This document shows, one piece after another, positions 5,615-53,099 of a stretch of 64,000 nt of DNA. The translations under genes were made by a program, and so were the position numbers. The notes beneath the pieces are model-generated. The model saw nothing but the letters and a program-made list of their open reading frames with translations. It was not told the DNA's origin and made no database searches. The first letter of the stretch is position 1, and every line of letters begins with the position of its first letter. The stretch lies in the IMG/VR virus record IMGVR_UViG_3300021963_000023, positions 1 through 64,000 of that record. The stretch is one strand, 5' to 3'.

Positions 5615-6538
5615 ATGAAAAGAACAATTAGATTGACGGAAAGCGAATTAACAGCTTTGGTAAAAAAAATATTAAATGAAGTTGCTGAAGAACCGGTACT
5701 AGATAAACAAACCAAAATATTTGGTAATTTCTTCTTCGGTGAGGGTAAAACAAAACCAATGAGTTTCAACGGTGCACAAGTTACACAAGCCGATGTTGAT
5801 AGATTAATTAAAGAAATGGCGATGTTTATTAAGAATACAGGTACACTTCAAACATTACAAAAATTTGGTAGAACCGAAGGAGGTTATTCTAATAACCAAA
5901 ATATACCAAAATTCATTAGTCTTAACATAGGTACATCACACACAGGATCGGGCGAAGCAAATTCAAATGTTGCTCAAGGTAGATTTAGTTTCTTAAGTGG
6001 TATGGTGATGAAAGCGTTTGATTTACTTGGTGTCGATACATCAATAGCTAGATCGGTAGTAATCACAAATTCTAACACATCTTATTCACCAACAAGTTTG
6101 GATAAAAATTTCTTTGACCCTAAAAAACTTAAACCAGAAGATATTGAAAGATGGGGACACATTAGTATTACCAACTTAGCTACTATGGGTCATAAAACAG
6201 GTGGTATTCAACAAATACAAAGAAATTTAAATAATGCTTCAAGTGATATTAACAATATATTTGTTGATGGGGTTAACGAAGAAAAGGTTGTTTTTTTTAT
6301 TAAGAGACTTCAAACATTCTCCGACATTCAAGATTTAAGCAATTCAATCAATGCCGGCGGTCAATGGGCTTCGTTAGAGGATTTTTTAAACGACCAGCTT
6401 TTTGATGATATGGATGAAATGAGAGCAGTCGCCACCCATTTACAAAAATGTGCAGCCACTAGTGGAAAACAAAAAGATACTATTAGATTGGTACCAAAAA
6501 CAGGAGGAATGTTTATCAGTATTGGATTAGGTAACTAA
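5615..6538 (+). CDS. LTES-leader protein with possible OmpA_C-like domain
   Basis: FFFGEGK...TSHTGSGEANSNVAQGR resembles the OmpA peptidoglycan-binding motif. Confidence 0.55.
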   Translation: MKRTIRLTESELTALVKKILNEVAEEPVLDKQTKIFGNFFFGEGKTKPMSFNGAQVTQADVDRLIKEMAMFIKNTGTLQTLQKFGRTEGGYSNNQNIPKFISLNIGTSHTGSGEANSNVAQGRFSFLSGMVMKAFDLLGVDTSIARSVVITNSNTSYSPTSLDKNFFDPKKLKPEDIERWGHISITNLATMGHKTGGIQQIQRNLNNASSDINNIFVDGVNEEKVVFFIKRLQTFSDIQDLSNSINAGGQWASLEDFLNDQLFDDMDEMRAVATHLQKCAATSGKQKDTIRLVPKTGGMFISIGLGN

Positions 6539-39719: not shown

Positions 39720-40116
39720 TGGTGGAGGTGACGGGACTCGAACCCGTGTCTTTCCTGTTCAACAATAAATGACTACACGTTTATTCAATTGGTTCTCAAC
39801 TGACAAATAGTAAATTAATTACAGGAAATTTACAATACTGTTTTTGACTGGATTTTCAAGAGCCGTCAAATTTGCTCCAACACTCTTCGGGTGGTATTAC
39901 ACCTTAAAGGCTTCTGTTCCTAGGTTATATGCCAGTCGACCCGATTGTAGTTTCGCCTTAGGCTACTGCTACGTTAGAAGTTGCAAGCAAGCCTGCTACT
40001 TCCATGTTGTTATAAACGTTGCCGTCTAAAATTTTCCACCATGTATTAAAGTCATAGATGAAGTCTGACTACGTGCCATTTACCCCTGATACCTGAAATC
40101 AATGCCAGGCACCCCC
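39720..40116 (-). ncRNA. ssrA: tmRNA, tag (A)GNVYNNMEVAGLLATSNVAVA*
   Basis: 5' GGGGGUG pairs with 3' CACCUCC-ACCA with G3.U70; GGUUCGAGUCC T-arm; UAGAC before the resume codon; tag ORF 40023-39958; 397 nt. Confidence 0.93.
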
Positions 40117-43926: not shown

Positions 43927-44728
43927 AGGCTGAGATTACACCATTTAACGATTGACTTTGAGACATTATTTTTTTCTTCTCTTATCCACTACCTTTTGAG
44001 TAGTACCAATCAGCGACGGTCAATTAGATTAACCAATCCTTAAGTCGTTAGATACTCTTTTAATACTTATTACTCTTCGAGGTTGCCACCCCAATTAGTC
44101 CTTGCGGGACTAGAGAACTTTCTCAAAAATCATGTTGGGCTTGGGACCCCTTCATGGCCGAGAACCTCTCTCGACTGTGTAGTCACCTGTCTCCAACGAC
44201 TGACGAGCACTTTTCCTTTATTGTTTGTAGTTGTTAAACCAAAATTAACAAAGTTTGTTGGTTCCGAATGTGGAAAGTAGCGGCTCGTCTGCCAGCCAAG
44301 CCACCTTTTGAGCGACTCGATACTAAACTACTCTCTGAGATATCCCTATCTCCATATTTTTGGACTCCTTCGAAATTAAACTCTTGGTAGAATTTAACTA
44401 AGGATGACAACAGCACCACCTGTTTTTCACCATACCTTTCGGTTTTAAGACGCCCCTAATATTGAATCACACAATTATAAGATTGGAAATCCTACTTCTC
44501 GTAATAACTCTACAGATTATTCTTATTGGTGTTCCCACCTCAATCAAACAACTCGGATTGCTTGATCATCGAACCACTTTCCCTACAGTGTTACCCTCAG
44601 TACTTAAGGTTCAACGATATTCTGCTTGCCTACTCAAGATCCATTACTGAATCCGCAAAACACTTAACCAAATGCTTCACTTTATCCCACTTTCATGGTT
44701 TATTTTAATCGACCATAGGCGGCCAATA
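43927..44728 (-). ncRNA. large (~800 nt) structured ncRNA, GOLLD-like
   Basis: no credible ORF; GC-richer than flanks; many hairpins (ACC-GAAA-GGT, TAGTCC-CGCAA-GGACTA, CTAC-TCAAAAG-GTAG); own promoter and terminator; next to a phage tRNA array; size fits GOLLD; ends approximate. Confidence 0.65.
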
Positions 44729-45682: not shown

Positions 45683-45982
45683 TTATTTTTTAACTTTTCT
45701 TTTATTTAAAAATTCATAAAACTTATTTTCATAGTTTATAAAGTGTGTCATAGCAAACCATTTACCAAAAACACTACCACCTATATAAACAATAATAACA
45801 ACCCAATCACTTGCAAATAATCTTTCTAATGAAAAATATATTGAACCCAAAGAAACGAGATTAATCCATATTGAATTGAATACAAGTTGCTTAACCTTAT
45901 TCTCATAGGTATATTTTATTTCCATTGTTTTAAAAATGTTGAATAATACCTGAAAGAAAAACACTAATACATATAACCACAT
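45683..45982 (-). CDS. small three-TM membrane protein
   Basis: hydrophobic ORF between tRNAs. Confidence 0.7.
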   Translation of the reverse strand: MWLYVLVFFFQVLFNIFKTMEIKYTYENKVKQLVFNSIWINLVSLGSIYFSLERLFASDWVVIIVYIGGSVFGKWFAMTHFINYENKFYEFLNKRKVKK

Positions 45983-46305: not shown

Positions 46306-46379
46306 AGCTTCCTGTCAGAATCGAACTGACGACCTACTGATTACAAATCAGTCGCTCTGGCCTGCTGAGCTAAGGAAGC
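46306..46379 (-). tRNA. tRNA-Thr(TGT)
   Basis: cloverleaf. Confidence 0.9.
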
Positions 46380-46384
46380 GTTTG

Positions 46385-46591: not shown

Positions 46592-47131
46592 TTACTCTAC
46601 ATTAGTTGTTGGATCATACTGAAATTTAATATGTGTGAATCCAAGTTCTAAATTATTCGTTATTTCAATTTTATCTTCGTCAATGTTATATGAACACATG
46701 TCACAATTCCAAAGCGAATTCCTTAATCCTTCTTTAAATTTTTTCATGTCTTTAATCCCAATTAAATTAAACACACATTCTAAAGTTTCTGGTAGATATT
46801 TTTTTTCTAAAAACTTGTTATGATTAAAATATGCTTCCCATTTTTCTTTGTTTCCTGAATCACCTCTTTCATGTGTGCAACTGTTAAACCACTCATCATC
46901 TAGTCTATTATTTTCAATTTCATCTTTTTCACTTACCTTAATAACTTTTCTTGAATGGATCATATCAGTTGATAATGTTGGGAGGTGATTATCGACAATA
47001 TTTTCGCCAATATAATATCCTAATTGGTAATCCATACTTACATTCTCAAGATACTCTTCATTTTTTTTAATTTGACCAATCTTATATTCTGGTTTTTTTA
47101 TTTCTTCTAATATTTCTTCAAGCGATCTCAT
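46592..47131 (-). CDS. hypothetical protein
   Basis: 179-aa ORF within the tRNA array. Confidence 0.75.
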   Translation of the reverse strand: MRSLEEILEEIKKPEYKIGQIKKNEEYLENVSMDYQLGYYIGENIVDNHLPTLSTDMIHSRKVIKVSEKDEIENNRLDDEWFNSCTHERGDSGNKEKWEAYFNHNKFLEKKYLPETLECVFNLIGIKDMKKFKEGLRNSLWNCDMCSYNIDEDKIEITNNLELGFTHIKFQYDPTTNVE

Positions 47132-47786: not shown

Positions 47787-47833
47787 TGTCAAAGAACTTT
47801 ATCAAATATAAGAATAATAAATTATAAAACAAA
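47787..47833 (-). promoter_or_regulatory. Bacteroidetes promoter + boxA
   Basis: TTTG-N19-TATATTTG (47803-47833), then AGTTCTTTGACA (47787-47798). Confidence 0.72.
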
Positions 47834-47863
47834 AAACCCGAACATTTTTAGTTGTTCGGGTTT
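47826..47863 (-). terminator. terminator of putative attenuator 2
   Basis: AAACCCGAACA/TGTTCGGGTTT plus T-tract. Confidence 0.75.
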
Positions 47864-47884
47864 CGATATTAGTTAAAAAAAGTA

Positions 47885-47992
47885 TTATCCTTTATTGATA
47901 TCCGAACATATGTAGCATAATGGTTGCACACCATACCCATTACCATTGTTAAGGGGTCTCGTACTTGTCAATATGTTATTTATATTCTTCAT
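47885..47992 (-). CDS. 35-aa putative leader peptide MKNINNILTSTRPLNNGNGYGVQPLCYICSDINKG
   Basis: read by eye; lies between a TATCTTTG promoter (48011-48018) and a terminator. Confidence 0.55.
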   Translation of the reverse strand: MKNINNILTSTRPLNNGNGYGVQPLCYICSDINKG

Positions 47993-48041
47993 CGTTTTAA
48001 TAAGTATACGCAAAGATAAGAAAAAACTGAATACTAAAAAA

Positions 48042-48455
48042 TTATTTTATTTTATAAGATAAACCAATTCCTGGTGAAAAATTAGAACCCACTAAATTTC
48101 CTATTATCCATAGTTTCAAATCAGAAGATTTTAATGCGTTATACCCAATAAATGCGTTTATCTTGTTTTCGTTATTAACTGGTTGTATACCAGCCCCGAT
48201 TAAAATTTTATCGGGTTGTAACATTTTTAAAATTCCTAATTTTAAATTCGACGTGATTGAACCAGTTTTTTGGTTTGCCAAATTTGTGTCATTGTAAGGT
48301 GCTCCGACGTATAACCCCCACGTGTTTTTTAATGCGCCGACCGTAATGTAACCATCTAATCCTTTGTTTGTTGCTGATACGAACACTTCTTTTTGTCCGT
48401 AGGTCACTGCCTTCACTCCCAATAGCATCATGACCAATATAATTTTTAGTTTCAT
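48042..48455 (-). CDS. small secreted beta-strand/barrel-like protein
   Basis: signal peptide; C-terminal GIGLSYKIK. Confidence 0.65.
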   Translation of the reverse strand: MKLKIILVMMLLGVKAVTYGQKEVFVSATNKGLDGYITVGALKNTWGLYVGAPYNDTNLANQKTGSITSNLKLGILKMLQPDKILIGAGIQPVNNENKINAFIGYNALKSSDLKLWIIGNLVGSNFSPGIGLSYKIK

Positions 48456-48589: not shown

Positions 48590-49018
48590 TTAATGATTTT
48601 TATGATTACCCTTGTGATTATCAATTAAAGGAAATTTTAAACCAAACGTTTTTAATTCTTTATCAGTTGATTGAGAATAAACAAAACTAATTGGAGAATT
48701 TTTTATTGGTTTAAAATCAATACCCCACATTGCCATAGTTGAGTGATTTTGCATATAACAAGCGGATAGCATTGCCCCAACTCTATTTTTTAAAAATCCA
48801 TATCTACTTCCCACCATTGTAATATCATAACCACCAATCGTTTTTGTAAAAGATATATGGGCCGCAATGTTTTTTGTTATGTTTTGCATTGCTTCAACTT
48901 CTATATAACCTTTATTCTTTCCGTGTAGATTTAGATTACCTCCCGTAACCGAAATCATTTGTCCTTTTGCAATTGTAGAAAGAAATACAACACATAGGAT
49001 TAAAAATGAATGTTTCAT
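48590..49018 (-). CDS. small secreted beta-strand/barrel-like protein
   Basis: signal peptide; alternating beta pattern, TFGLKFPL. Confidence 0.65.
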   Translation of the reverse strand: MKHSFLILCVVFLSTIAKGQMISVTGGNLNLHGKNKGYIEVEAMQNITKNIAAHISFTKTIGGYDITMVGSRYGFLKNRVGAMLSACYMQNHSTMAMWGIDFKPIKNSPISFVYSQSTDKELKTFGLKFPLIDNHKGNHKNH

Positions 49019-50492: not shown

Positions 50493-50565
50493 TGGTGGAC
50501 ACGTAGGGAATCGAACCCTTTCACTCTGATTGCAAATCAGGTGGTCTGCCATTGACATCCGGCCC
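50493..50565 (-). tRNA. tRNA-Ala(TGC)
   Basis: G3.U70, TGC loop, CCA; imperfect acceptor stem. Confidence 0.75.
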
Positions 50566-50613
50566 ATTATATTCTGCCAAAACTTGCTTTTTTTATAAGA
50601 TTTGGCACGGTAT

Positions 50614-50773: not shown

Positions 50774-50911
50774 TGAATTTAGTTTTACCTTTTTTCTTTT
50801 ACAAAGATACTAATAAGTATTCGTAAAGTCAATAAAAACTCTAATTTTTATTTTTTTGAGTAAAAAACAAGTTAAGAGTTGCCGAGACTTGCCTTGTTGA
50901 TATTTATCAAT

Positions 50912-51454
50912 ATGGCAAAAAATAATAGACTAAACGTCTCTCTATTACCTTTATTGGTACTGTTTAGCTTCTATGGGTTATATTCTTATATAGTTAGCCC
51001 AATAGAAGAAACTAGATCTGTTTATATCTCAAAAGTTGAGAACAAAATTAAGATCGGTAAATTGGCAAACAATAGGAATTTAGCTTTTGGTTGTAAGAAT
51101 ATTTTTGAAGAAATCTTACAAGAAAAGGAATTTGTTATTGTTGATAACCCAAATTCTGCAGATTTGATATTCAATGCTGAGATTTTGTATTTTGACGTTA
51201 ATCGCACAAAAAGAAATATATCAGTATTTCATTCTGACATTGAGGAAACTCTGGTTGTTATGAAAGGAACACTTACAGATAAGAATGGTAAAAAAATAAA
51301 AGAAGCCGTTGCAGAGGAATCTAGTTCAGAAATATCAACATCGACTTTAATAACTGATGAGGGAAGTGATAAAATAAATCAACAAGCACTTTCGTCTGCA
51401 ATAAAAAAAACATCGGAATCACTAATAAATAAAATATTATTTAATAAAAAGTAA
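50912..51454 (+). CDS. membrane-anchored periplasmic protein, CsgG/LptE/TolB_N-like fold
   Basis: N-terminal TM; VYISKVENK...EEILQEK...ADLIFNAEIL...ALSSAIKK. Confidence 0.55.
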   Translation: MAKNNRLNVSLLPLLVLFSFYGLYSYIVSPIEETRSVYISKVENKIKIGKLANNRNLAFGCKNIFEEILQEKEFVIVDNPNSADLIFNAEILYFDVNRTKRNISVFHSDIEETLVVMKGTLTDKNGKKIKEAVAEESSSEISTSTLITDEGSDKINQQALSSAIKKTSESLINKILFNKK

Positions 51455-51455
51455 A

Positions 51456-53099
51456 ATGAAAAAAGCACTCTCTCTTTGTATTTTTTTATTAGTTGCCATG
51501 ACTTCTTTTGGTCAACTAACAATTAATCAAACAATAACACCAACAACAGGATTAAAAGTTGGTGACACATTAACAGTAAAATACACTGTTGTAAGGGGCA
51601 CCACAACCCCTCGTTATTTTTGGTTAAGATACTCATTTAATAATAAAGCATTAACAATGGTACCTAATAGTACTGTTTTTTCACAAGGTAATTCCGTACA
51701 GACATTTTATACTGGTTGGGATAACTATAAGTTTACACCAGCTGCAAATATTGCAGATACACAATTATATTTACAATATCAATCAACTCCTTGGGCATAC
51801 GCCGCTAACACAGATTGGAATGTTGGACAACTTACACTACAAAGAGCTGATGCATCAATTAATGGTGATATCGCAAGTCAAAAATATGTTTTAAAAGATC
51901 AAAACACATATAACAATATTCATAAACTTGATTTATCATATGCTATAAATGATTCGTCTACAAATATTTCTCCAATAACTAGAAATGCAACTAATATTTC
52001 ATTGTCCAATGTTCTTGGAAATACTTCACAGTTTAAGGTAAAAGTTTTGTTTCCACAAGGGTACACAATAACGGATCATAATATTCAGTTAATGAAATTA
52101 AAATCGGATGGTAGTGGTGATATAGATTGGTCACAACAACCCATTGCACAATTACCATTAGACGCTACTGGTGAAGCACTTTTCACAACACAAGTTAAAG
52201 TAGGTGATAGTATAGGATTATGGGTTAGTCCGGCGTCATCAAAAGCTTGGATGAATAACGTAATTACAGTTTCAGATGCATATAAAGCATTCTTAGGCCA
52301 TTCACAAACAGATATTAGTGGTACAGCCAACTTTTTTACATATCCAGTTTTAGAAAAGAAAATTGGTAATGTTACTAAAAACGATGCGATTTTTAACGAA
52401 AGTGACTCATATAATTTATTTGCACATGTCATGGGACAAAACGTATCTGCCAATGCATTTATACCAACTCAAACAGCAACGTCTTGGAGATTTCATAGTG
52501 GGTTATTAAATCAAAGTTGGTTAGATGGTATTCCAAAGTATAAGGTAACTATTGATACACCAATTAAAGAGGTTTATGCAGTATTTGCGTGGGGTGGTGA
52601 TTTAGATTGGTCACATTCATCTGATCCTGCGGTAATTGCTAGTAGAATATCATCAGGACAATTCACAAACTCAATTAATAATACTAAATCAACAATGTCT
52701 ACACAATCAATGGCATATAAAACCGAGGCATTGGAAACAGCTAAATTAAGTGTTGTATCTACATTAGAAAATGGTAAAGTTGTGCTAACAACGAATCTAA
52801 CGAAAGAGGGGTTAGCCGGATTAGAAGTTATAATGAATTATGATAATTCAAAATTAACTTTAGATAATATCATATTTGATTCTGGATCAAACATCACCAA
52901 TTTTTCAACTAAAGAAGAAGGTAGATTAACATTTGGTTCTATTGATCAATTAAAAACAGCTAGAATAAAAGTTGGTACACCATATAAATTAATATTTACA
53001 CCAAAAGATACCTTAACAAATACCGCTGGGTTATTCTACTTTGTTTTGTCTGATGCTGTTGATGGTTTCGGTAACAAAATAAATTTAATTGTAGAATAA
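51456..53099 (+). CDS. secreted protein with cohesin-like ends and a dockerin-like segment
   Basis: signal peptide; VGDTLTVKY..F.LRYSFNNKAL; ITVSDAY...FNESDSY; GLAGLEVIMNYDNSKL. Confidence 0.6.
   Translation: MKKALSLCIFLLVAMTSFGQLTINQTITPTTGLKVGDTLTVKYTVVRGTTTPRYFWLRYSFNNKALTMVPNSTVFSQGNSVQTFYTGWDNYKFTPAANIADTQLYLQYQSTPWAYAANTDWNVGQLTLQRADASINGDIASQKYVLKDQNTYNNIHKLDLSYAINDSSTNISPITRNATNISLSNVLGNTSQFKVKVLFPQGYTITDHNIQLMKLKSDGSGDIDWSQQPIAQLPLDATGEALFTTQVKVGDSIGLWVSPASSKAWMNNVITVSDAYKAFLGHSQTDISGTANFFTYPVLEKKIGNVTKNDAIFNESDSYNLFAHVMGQNVSANAFIPTQTATSWRFHSGLLNQSWLDGIPKYKVTIDTPIKEVYAVFAWGGDLDWSHSSDPAVIASRISSGQFTNSINNTKSTMSTQSMAYKTEALETAKLSVVSTLENGKVVLTTNLTKEGLAGLEVIMNYDNSKLTLDNIIFDSGSNITNFSTKEEGRLTFGSIDQLKTARIKVGTPYKLIFTPKDTLTNTAGLFYFVLSDAVDGFGNKINLIVE

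Follow-up and report, generated by a model that had tools for sequence, protein, structure and literature searches.

Why phages carry tRNA genes and when they use them is debated, the candidate reasons being compensation of codon usage, replacement of degraded host tRNA and escape from tRNA-cleaving defences. In a freshwater phage contig, a block of tRNA genes is interrupted by a 35-codon open reading frame (ORF) followed by a terminator, in front of a group of tRNA genes. A sequence-only reading had proposed that this element is a leader-peptide attenuator, the second with the same architecture in the region. We therefore asked whether the element is real, whether it has the properties of an attenuator and, if so, what it controls and what it senses.

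A short ORF and a terminator inside a phage tRNA array

The DNA analysed (the window) is a stretch of 64,000 nucleotides, the first 64 kb of the 251,149-bp virus record IMGVR_UViG_3300021963_000023, with 32% G+C. Between 45.6 and 50.6 kb the minus strand carries 22 tRNAs, 21 of them identified with ARAGORN and one weaker tRNA identified with Rfam, and downstream on the same strand lie a GOLLD RNA and a tmRNA. At gathering thresholds, tRNAs, tmRNA and GOLLD were the only Rfam families found in the window. The element lies inside this array, between tRNA-Glu (48584-48512) with a 137-aa ORF (48455-48042) and tRNA-Leu(taa) (47770-47685). Everything described in the sequence-only reading is present at the stated coordinates, and the features, all on the minus strand, are the following:

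48018-48011 (-), promoter -7 box TATCTTTG (Bacteroidota type TAnnTTTG) of the leader transcript; the -33 element is weak
48008-47993 (-), short A/U-rich 5' UTR (ATACTTATTAAAACG), nearly invariant in 13 sequences
47992-47885 (-), leader ORF, 35 codons plus TAA (MKNINNILTSTRPLNNGNGYGVQPLCYICSDINKG)
47987-47981 (-), region 1 (GAAUAUA, codons 2-4), pairing with region 2
47977-47912 (-), proposed sensor core, codons 6-27 (NILTSTRPLNNGNGYGVQPLCY)
47910-47902 (-), region 2 (UAUGUUCGG, codons 28-31), pairing either with region 1 or with region 3
47863-47853 (-), region 3, 5' arm of the terminator (AAACCCGAACA), in which CCGAACA (47859-47853) is the antiterminator partner of region 2
47844-47831 (-), region 4, 3' arm of the terminator (UGUUCGGGUUU, 47844-47834) and U tract (47836-47831)
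47833-47803 (-), putative second promoter: TTTG (47833-47830), 19 nt, TATATTTG (47810-47803)
47797-47789 (-), conserved motif GTTCTTTGA in the spacer before tRNA-Leu
47770-45593 (-), tRNA cluster proposed to be regulated: Leu(taa), Arg(tct), Pro(tgg), Asn(gtt), Leu(tag), Tyr(gta), Met(cat), Thr(tgt), Gly(tcc), Gln(ttg) and Ser(gct), with two interspersed ORFs (47131-46592 and 45982-45683)
50809-50614 (-), companion module 1: -7 box 50809-50802, ORF 50773-50675 (MRQQKHTMSFIICSKWADERAMSDSLEDTDVG), region 1 50772-50766, region 2 50702-50694, terminator 50651-50622

The segment TGTTCGG (47908-47902, codons 29-31) lies 5-7 codons before the stop and is the exact complement of CCGAACA in the 5' arm of the terminator, which spans 47864-47833 with 12 pairs and is followed by a T tract. 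An automatically generated list of ORFs extends the reading frame to a TTG at 48013, but the ATG is the start conserved in relatives. The distance from the stop to the terminator stem is 20 nt in this element (module 2) and 21 nt in module 1, and the tail GGGTTTTTTGTTTTATA occurs exactly twice in the window, at 47839-47823 and 50627-50611. The two modules had been considered unrelated in sequence; this has to be corrected, since their terminators are 78% identical over about 55 nt and only the ORFs and the central stem bases differ. Pfam and PHROGs gave no family for either leader peptide and only weak hits for neighbouring ORFs, and the two ORFs within the downstream cluster had no significant family match (only marginal PHROG hits, E about 0.005).

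Coding constraint, alternative pairings and transcripts

To establish whether the element is conserved, a search was done with the 547-aa protein encoded at 51456-53099, which brought in 80 related contigs, and two pattern scans, with the terminator tail and with a module-2 motif, added further relatives. Module 2 is present at full length in 12 distinct relatives, always in phages with the large downstream cluster, and is absent where that cluster is small. The same tRNA order follows the leader in all relatives, usually with Val(tac) and often Gly(gcc) as well. In the alignment, all indels inside the ORF are multiples of three, the start and the N-terminus MKN(I/L)NNI are fixed, and third positions vary synonymously, the Pro codon after CAA being CCA, CCG, CCT or CCC. 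The ORF is therefore under coding constraint. GenBank phages, on the other hand, hold no relative of the region, the 547-aa neighbour protein or the module.

Both leader regions fold better than shuffled controls, with z of -3.5 and -5.3. On 13 distinct sequences, RNAalifold predicted without guidance a helix between codons 2-4 (GAAUAUA) and UAUGUUC at codons 28-30 (helix 1:2), plus the terminator (helix 3:4). Helices 1:2 and 3:4 together are 93.5% paired, a value that no shuffle of 500 reached, and for the terminator 95.8% of cells are paired. The pair formed by alignment columns 28 and 109 is A-U in 7 sequences and U-A in 6, with none unpaired, and pair 30-107 is A-U in 11 and G-C in 2. The antiterminator (helix 2:3, UGUUCGG with CCGAACA, 7 bp) is 97.8% paired, and its only variable pair is U-A in 6 and A-U in 4 sequences, while GTTCGGA in region 2 is invariant. 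Column 109 is thus tied to column 28 in region 1 and to column 166 in region 3, which in turn pairs with column 178 in region 4, and two relatives (L205 and L206) carry T,A,T,A in columns 28/109/166/178 where the window has A,T,A,T. Module 1 behaves in the same way on 17 sequences: its antiterminator is 92.4% paired, and pair 86-138 is A-U in 8 and G-C in 8 sequences, at positions that lie in codons whose amino acids are not conserved. Energies fit a switch that is off by default. The terminator hairpin is -16.8 kcal/mol, the naked leader folds as 1:2 plus terminator at -38.9 kcal/mol, against -27.9 with 2:3 forced, and when region 4 is left out, 2:3 is the minimum-energy fold of 47912-47851, at -10.9 kcal/mol.

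These data bear on one alternative, namely that this is a plain terminator-promoter junction between two operons and that the ORF and the 7-nt complement are chance features. In favour of it, a close relative (L003, with the neighbour protein 85% identical) has the terminator and the downstream promoter-like site directly after the 137-aa gene, with no promoter box and no ORF, and similar terminators appear to end tRNA operons in Bacteroidota genomes. However, the conservation of the ORF with its indels in multiples of three, the covariation of 1:2 and 2:3, and the recurrence in many unrelated contigs described below contradict it, and we consider it very unlikely.

Transcripts were looked for in metatranscriptomes, and four freshwater datasets hold the region as assembled contigs. 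One contig of 358 nt covers 47991-47654 without a break, including leader ORF, terminator, spacer and tRNA-Leu, while no contig piece, and no depth, lies directly upstream at 47992-48075. For module 1, contigs from two runs end at 50796/50795, 6-7 nt after the TATCTTTG box, and run on through the terminator into sequence of a variant strain. These contigs have no strand and flat depth, and show presence and continuity of the RNA rather than termination efficiency, but bins 48628-48995 and 50836-51000 are empty in all runs, which argues against DNA carry-over. Together with the conserved 2:3 pairing, these results support the attenuator proposed in the sequence-only reading. A separate promoter overlapping the T tract, providing a basal level to which attenuation would only add, had also been proposed. 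It is plausible, since TTTG-N19-TATATTTG follows the terminator in all module-2 homologues and is conserved in relatives that lack the leader ORF, although it has not been shown by 5' ends. In module 1 of the relatives, by contrast, the first tRNA begins about 5 to 15 nt after the T tract, so that those tRNAs can only be reached through the terminator.

Leader codons and the tRNA genes behind them

The sequence-only reading did not identify what is regulated or what is sensed. The leader precedes a tRNA cluster, and its codons correspond to those tRNAs. The core of module 2 reads L T S T R P L N N G N G Y G V Q P L, and all 10 amino-acid specificities of the 11 downstream tRNAs (Leu, Arg, Pro, Asn, Tyr, Met, Thr, Gly, Gln, Ser) are represented in the leader. 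Ten of the 11 tRNAs have a strictly cognate codon, Arg being AGA (tRNA-Arg(tct)) and the core Ser being AGT (tRNA-Ser(gct)). The match is imperfect: CCC, CTT and GGT are not strictly cognate to the UGG, UAG and UCC anticodons, and the window keeps a Val codon but has lost tRNA-Val, the gene being encoded in relatives, which explains the codon. Behind module 1 lie Ile, Phe, Lys, Trp, Arg(acg), Cys, His, Asp, Ser(tga) and Glu, and its leader core reads K H T M S F I I C S K W A D E R, with Arg as CGT and Ser as TCN, so that the Arg and Ser codon boxes are split correctly between the two leaders. All ten module-1 tRNAs have a strictly cognate codon (p=0.0015 against windows of the phage's own long ORFs), or eleven of eleven (p=5e-5) if the Ala-like tRNA at 50565-50496, missed by ARAGORN, is counted. 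At the amino-acid level each leader matches its own set best, with a joint probability of coverage and fraction of 1e-2 to 1e-4 per leader.

Leader composition also changes with gene content. Module-1 leaders come in two types: type A (...HTMSFIICSKWADER..., with I or T after HTMSF) precedes [Ala] Ile Phe Lys [Glu] Trp Arg Cys His [Met Thr] Asp Ser Glu, and in one contig (L184) the 13 amino acids of the tRNA set are all present in the leader, whereas type B (...LTN.TS.SNQLNWNEQPM...) precedes Pro Asn Trp Leu Gln Thr Asp Ser Glu. Another contig (L230) has Y where others have H and has gained a CGT Arg codon, and its array holds Tyr and Arg(acg) and no His. A counter-example is L228, in which a type-A-like leader precedes a reduced array. 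In a different phage family (L074, L079) we found a module with the same N- and C-terminal design but with a core reading L N T F N R T E P T P A N D G L G N L, before Pro Asn Gly Asp Thr Ala Leu Arg Leu Val Glu Phe, where region 2 is TGTTCAG, pairing with CTGAACA.

To test the generality of this correspondence, contigs fetched only by the 17-nt terminator tail were used as an unbiased sample. They were scanned automatically for an ATG ORF of 18-60 codons ending 5-90 nt before a hairpin with a T run, followed within 160 nt by a tRNA, without any use of composition and excluding the window's own family. This gave 27 non-redundant modules in 117 loci. On average 0.94 of the tRNAs in the cluster behind a module have a cognate codon in its leader, against 0.605 (sd 0.053) when leaders and clusters are re-paired at random, and the fraction of leader codons that are cognate is 0.34, against 0.20 (sd 0.017); no permutation of 20,000 reached either value (both p<5e-5). 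The matching residues sit in the middle of the leaders, the in-set fraction across 23 modules being 0.71 in the core, 0.26 at codons 2-4 and 0.37 in the last nine codons. Clear cases are L075, with QQQQQQ (MKTIFVQQQQQQ...) before two tRNA-Gln genes, and L028, with LSLHSSLSYLLSYH before Tyr, Ser(tga), His, Ser(gct), Leu(taa), Leu(tag) and Leu(caa), where the codons TTA, CTG, TTG, TCA/TCG, AGT, CAT/CAC and TAC/TAT are all used, matching every isoacceptor box, and a 10-nt copy of the terminator's 3' arm lies inside the ORF. A further contig, L122, splits 21 tRNAs into four such units.

These observations allowed us to evaluate two other explanations. The ORF could encode a small functional phage protein with its own promoter and an ordinary terminator, the tRNAs being expressed from the next promoter and the codon match reflecting only the general codon usage of the phage. 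The strong conservation of the peptide core (NGNGYGVQP), the promoter-like site after the terminator, and the relatives without the ORF that keep the terminator and that promoter would be in agreement with this. However, the match is specific to each leader and its own cluster, two leaders in the same genome differ in the direction of their own tRNA sets, and shuffled pairing destroys the match. In addition, coding positions covary with the terminator arm, the residues over region 2 and behind it vary as amino acids while the RNA pairing is kept, there is no room for another promoter in module 1 of relatives, and leaders such as QQQQQQ before tRNA-Gln genes are hard to read as proteins. This explanation is thus unlikely. 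Alternatively, the leader could be translated and control the terminator in response to general translation capacity (ribosome availability, coupling) or through a peptide-mediated arrest that senses a small molecule, instead of the supply of the specific tRNAs. The order and nucleotide sequence of part of the core are more conserved than a list of codons would need, and single-copy sensor codons give weak specificity, but leader composition follows tRNA gene content across and within families, as in the change from His to Tyr, the gain of Arg CGT and the type A and type B leaders, which a general sensor would not need. We regard this possibility as unlikely.

Proposed regulation and comparison with other systems

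Although there is no experimental evidence that termination changes with tRNA supply, most likely this element is a ribosome-mediated transcription attenuator that controls a cluster of phage tRNA genes. In the proposed model, a transcript starts at the TATCTTTG promoter and its leader is translated while it is being made. If all the charged tRNAs whose codons are present in the core (codons about 6-27) are plentiful, the ribosome keeps up with the polymerase and covers region 2, 15-17 nt before the stop, so that region 3 pairs with region 4 and transcription stops; the stop codon lies 20-25 nt before the terminator stem, so a terminating ribosome does not block the terminator. If any of these tRNAs is scarce, the ribosome would stall in the core, leaving region 2 free to pair with region 3, and the polymerase would read on into tRNA-Leu and the ten tRNAs behind it. 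With no ribosome at all, region 1 pairs with region 2 and the terminator forms. The result would be supply on demand with negative feedback, in which phage tRNAs, once made and charged, shut off their own extra transcription. That stalling drives read-through is an inference that would require coupling of transcription and translation in the presumed host, and the trigger could be a mismatch between phage codon usage and the host tRNA pool, loss of host tRNA during infection, or tRNA-cleaving defences. Some features fit this model less well. Most sensor codons occur once or twice, which may give a shallow response, and they lie in the loop of the 1:2 helix rather than inside region 1, so that a ribosome stalled late in the core need not mask region 1, and queued ribosomes or steric exclusion may be needed to keep 1:2 open. 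Also, close relatives (L003, L124 and others with a small cluster) do without the leader ORF.

The leader-peptide attenuators of enterobacterial amino-acid operons (trpL, hisL, leuL, thrL, ilvL, pheL) share with this element a short ORF, an intrinsic terminator, three overlapping helices and, in the proposed model, translation of the ORF, termination as the default state and regulatory codons that report the supply of charged tRNA, the closest being the thr and ilv leaders, which also sense several amino acids at once. Here, however, the element is viral and tRNA genes lie downstream instead of biosynthetic or aminoacylation genes, so that the product sensed would be the product made, and the leader lists up to 13 different amino acids instead of runs of one codon as in the his or leu leaders. 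No Rfam leader family matches: permissive scans gave only sub-threshold hits, mostly driven by the terminator hairpin, with Leu_leader 17.6 bits (cut-off 50), Phe_leader 16.0 (55) and Thr_leader 13.3 (55), and His_leader 21.8 (49) for module 1. T-box riboswitches also make a terminator/antiterminator decision that depends on the state of a specific tRNA, but they bind uncharged tRNA directly through a specifier codon and the T-box sequence and have no translated ORF, and no T-box match was obtained here, even at E up to 10. With respect to the tRNA arrays of T4, T5, vibriophages, mycobacteriophages and crAss-like phages, thought to offset codon-usage mismatch or loss of host tRNA, we found no report of a dedicated sensor for their expression, nor of leader peptides or attenuators before phage tRNA genes, in full-text searches that did not cover most subscription journals. 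The device is not universal, since the 23-tRNA array of the Bacteroides phage crAss001 has no intrinsic terminators or leader-like ORFs on its strand. The lone tRNA-Arg(ccg) at 246.8 kb of the genome studied here has no leader.

It seems probable, beyond this locus, that many large phages, probably of Bacteroidota, divide their tRNA arrays into sub-operons, each gated by a translated leader that works as a codon checklist, with at least one codon for every tRNA gene behind it. If so, this would be a previously undescribed autoregulatory circuit for viral tRNA supply, extending classical attenuation to RNA genes and to viruses, and it could also act as a sensor of host tRNA depletion or cleavage. 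It would also provide a simple rule for annotation, a short ORF plus terminator before a tRNA block with composition equal to the tRNA set, by which operon structure and cryptic tRNAs could be predicted from the leader alone, as with the Ala codons of the module-1 leader, which point to the Ala-like tRNA mentioned above.

The host is probably a freshwater member of Bacteroidota. This is inferred from the promoters, which appear to fit the Bacteroidota consensus, and from the exact 17-nt terminator tail, which occurs mostly in Bacteroidota genomes, chiefly Flavobacteriaceae. The genome-wide count of TAnnTTTG (364) is, by our own estimate, about what base composition predicts, and was not used as host evidence. 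In bacterial genomes the tail mostly lies just after a tRNA gene, as if ending a tRNA operon, and no clear leader module before tRNAs was found in the 120 loci examined, judging from tail and tRNA positions only and without the ORF scan. Finally, the motif GTTCTTTGA in the spacer before tRNA-Leu, of unknown function, is conserved in relatives and in another phage family, and a second copy lies upstream of the GOLLD RNA.

Sequences around the first tRNA behind module 1

Two features were found behind the module-1 terminator, both on the minus strand:

50566-50613 (-), insertion of about 45 nt with its own hairpin
50496-50565 (-), tRNA-like gene with anticodon TGC (Ala)

The tRNA-like gene has a G3:U70 pair and was scored by Rfam at 29.7 bits, just above the cut-off, while it was not called by ARAGORN. 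The same sequence follows the module-1 terminator in several relatives, whereas others have a canonical tRNA-Ala(tgc) in this place. The presence of Ala codons in the module-1 leader suggests that this gene is functional. The insertion, whose hairpin is formed by GTGCCAAA...TTTTGGCA, lies between the terminator and the Ala-like tRNA, and among the sequences aligned it is seen only in the phage of the window; in most relatives the tRNA follows the T tract directly.

Variation in the tRNA clusters and their division into sub-operons

Differences in tRNA content were also observed in the cluster behind module 2. At 46379-46384 (-), tRNA-Met and tRNA-Thr are adjacent, whereas relatives carry tRNA-Val(tac), and often Gly(gcc), in this part of the cluster. 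The leader still has a GTG Val codon, which suggests a recent loss of the tRNA. In three related contigs (L212, L215 and L221), the tRNA-Asn of the module-2 cluster has anticodon ATT instead of GTT. In addition, one relative (L193) carries, just before module 2 and about 150 nt upstream of its module-2 ORF (position 5809 on the re-oriented array), a tRNA with anticodon CTA, called Pyl by ARAGORN and so of an amber-suppressor type.

In another contig, L122, four successive leader-terminator modules (106-2826 in the coordinates of the reverse-complemented locus) split a 21-tRNA array into sub-operons, namely Trp-Phe-Cys; Lys-Val-Arg-Gly-Gly-Glu-Met-Ile-Ala; Pro-Asp-Thr-Gln-His; and Leu-Leu-Tyr-Ser, with each leader listing its own set.

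Four ORFs of 99-179 aa are interspersed among the tRNAs in the window and would be co-regulated with them:

48590-49018 (-), ORF without Pfam or PHROG match
48042-48455 (-), ORF without Pfam or PHROG match
46592-47131 (-), ORF with only a marginal PHROG hit (E about 0.005)
45683-45982 (-), ORF with only a marginal PHROG hit (E about 0.005), to a holin family

Terminators and shared motifs near other RNA genes

Two other RNA genes of the window were found, with elements near them:

43927-44335 (-), GOLLD RNA (Rfam, 314 bits), at the end of the tRNA array
44745-44737 (-), GTTCTTTGA...ATATTGG motif preceding the GOLLD RNA
44792-44785 (-), TATCTTTG box preceding the GOLLD RNA
39720-40116 (-), phage-encoded tmRNA
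39713-39690 (-), terminator following the tmRNA

The motif preceding the GOLLD RNA is the same that lies between the module-2 terminator and tRNA-Leu, and this may be a shared start-proximal or processing signal. The tmRNA has an unusual predicted tag, GNVYNNMEVAGLLATSNVAVA, and the terminator that follows it has a similar tail. With respect to the exact tail, GGGTTTTTTGTTTTATA, among bacterial genome loci (L232-L351) it occurs mainly in Bacteroidota genomes, where it mostly lies just after a tRNA gene (Phe, Pro, Gly-Leu), as if ending a tRNA operon, and the phage attenuators seem to reuse a host-type terminator of tRNA operons.
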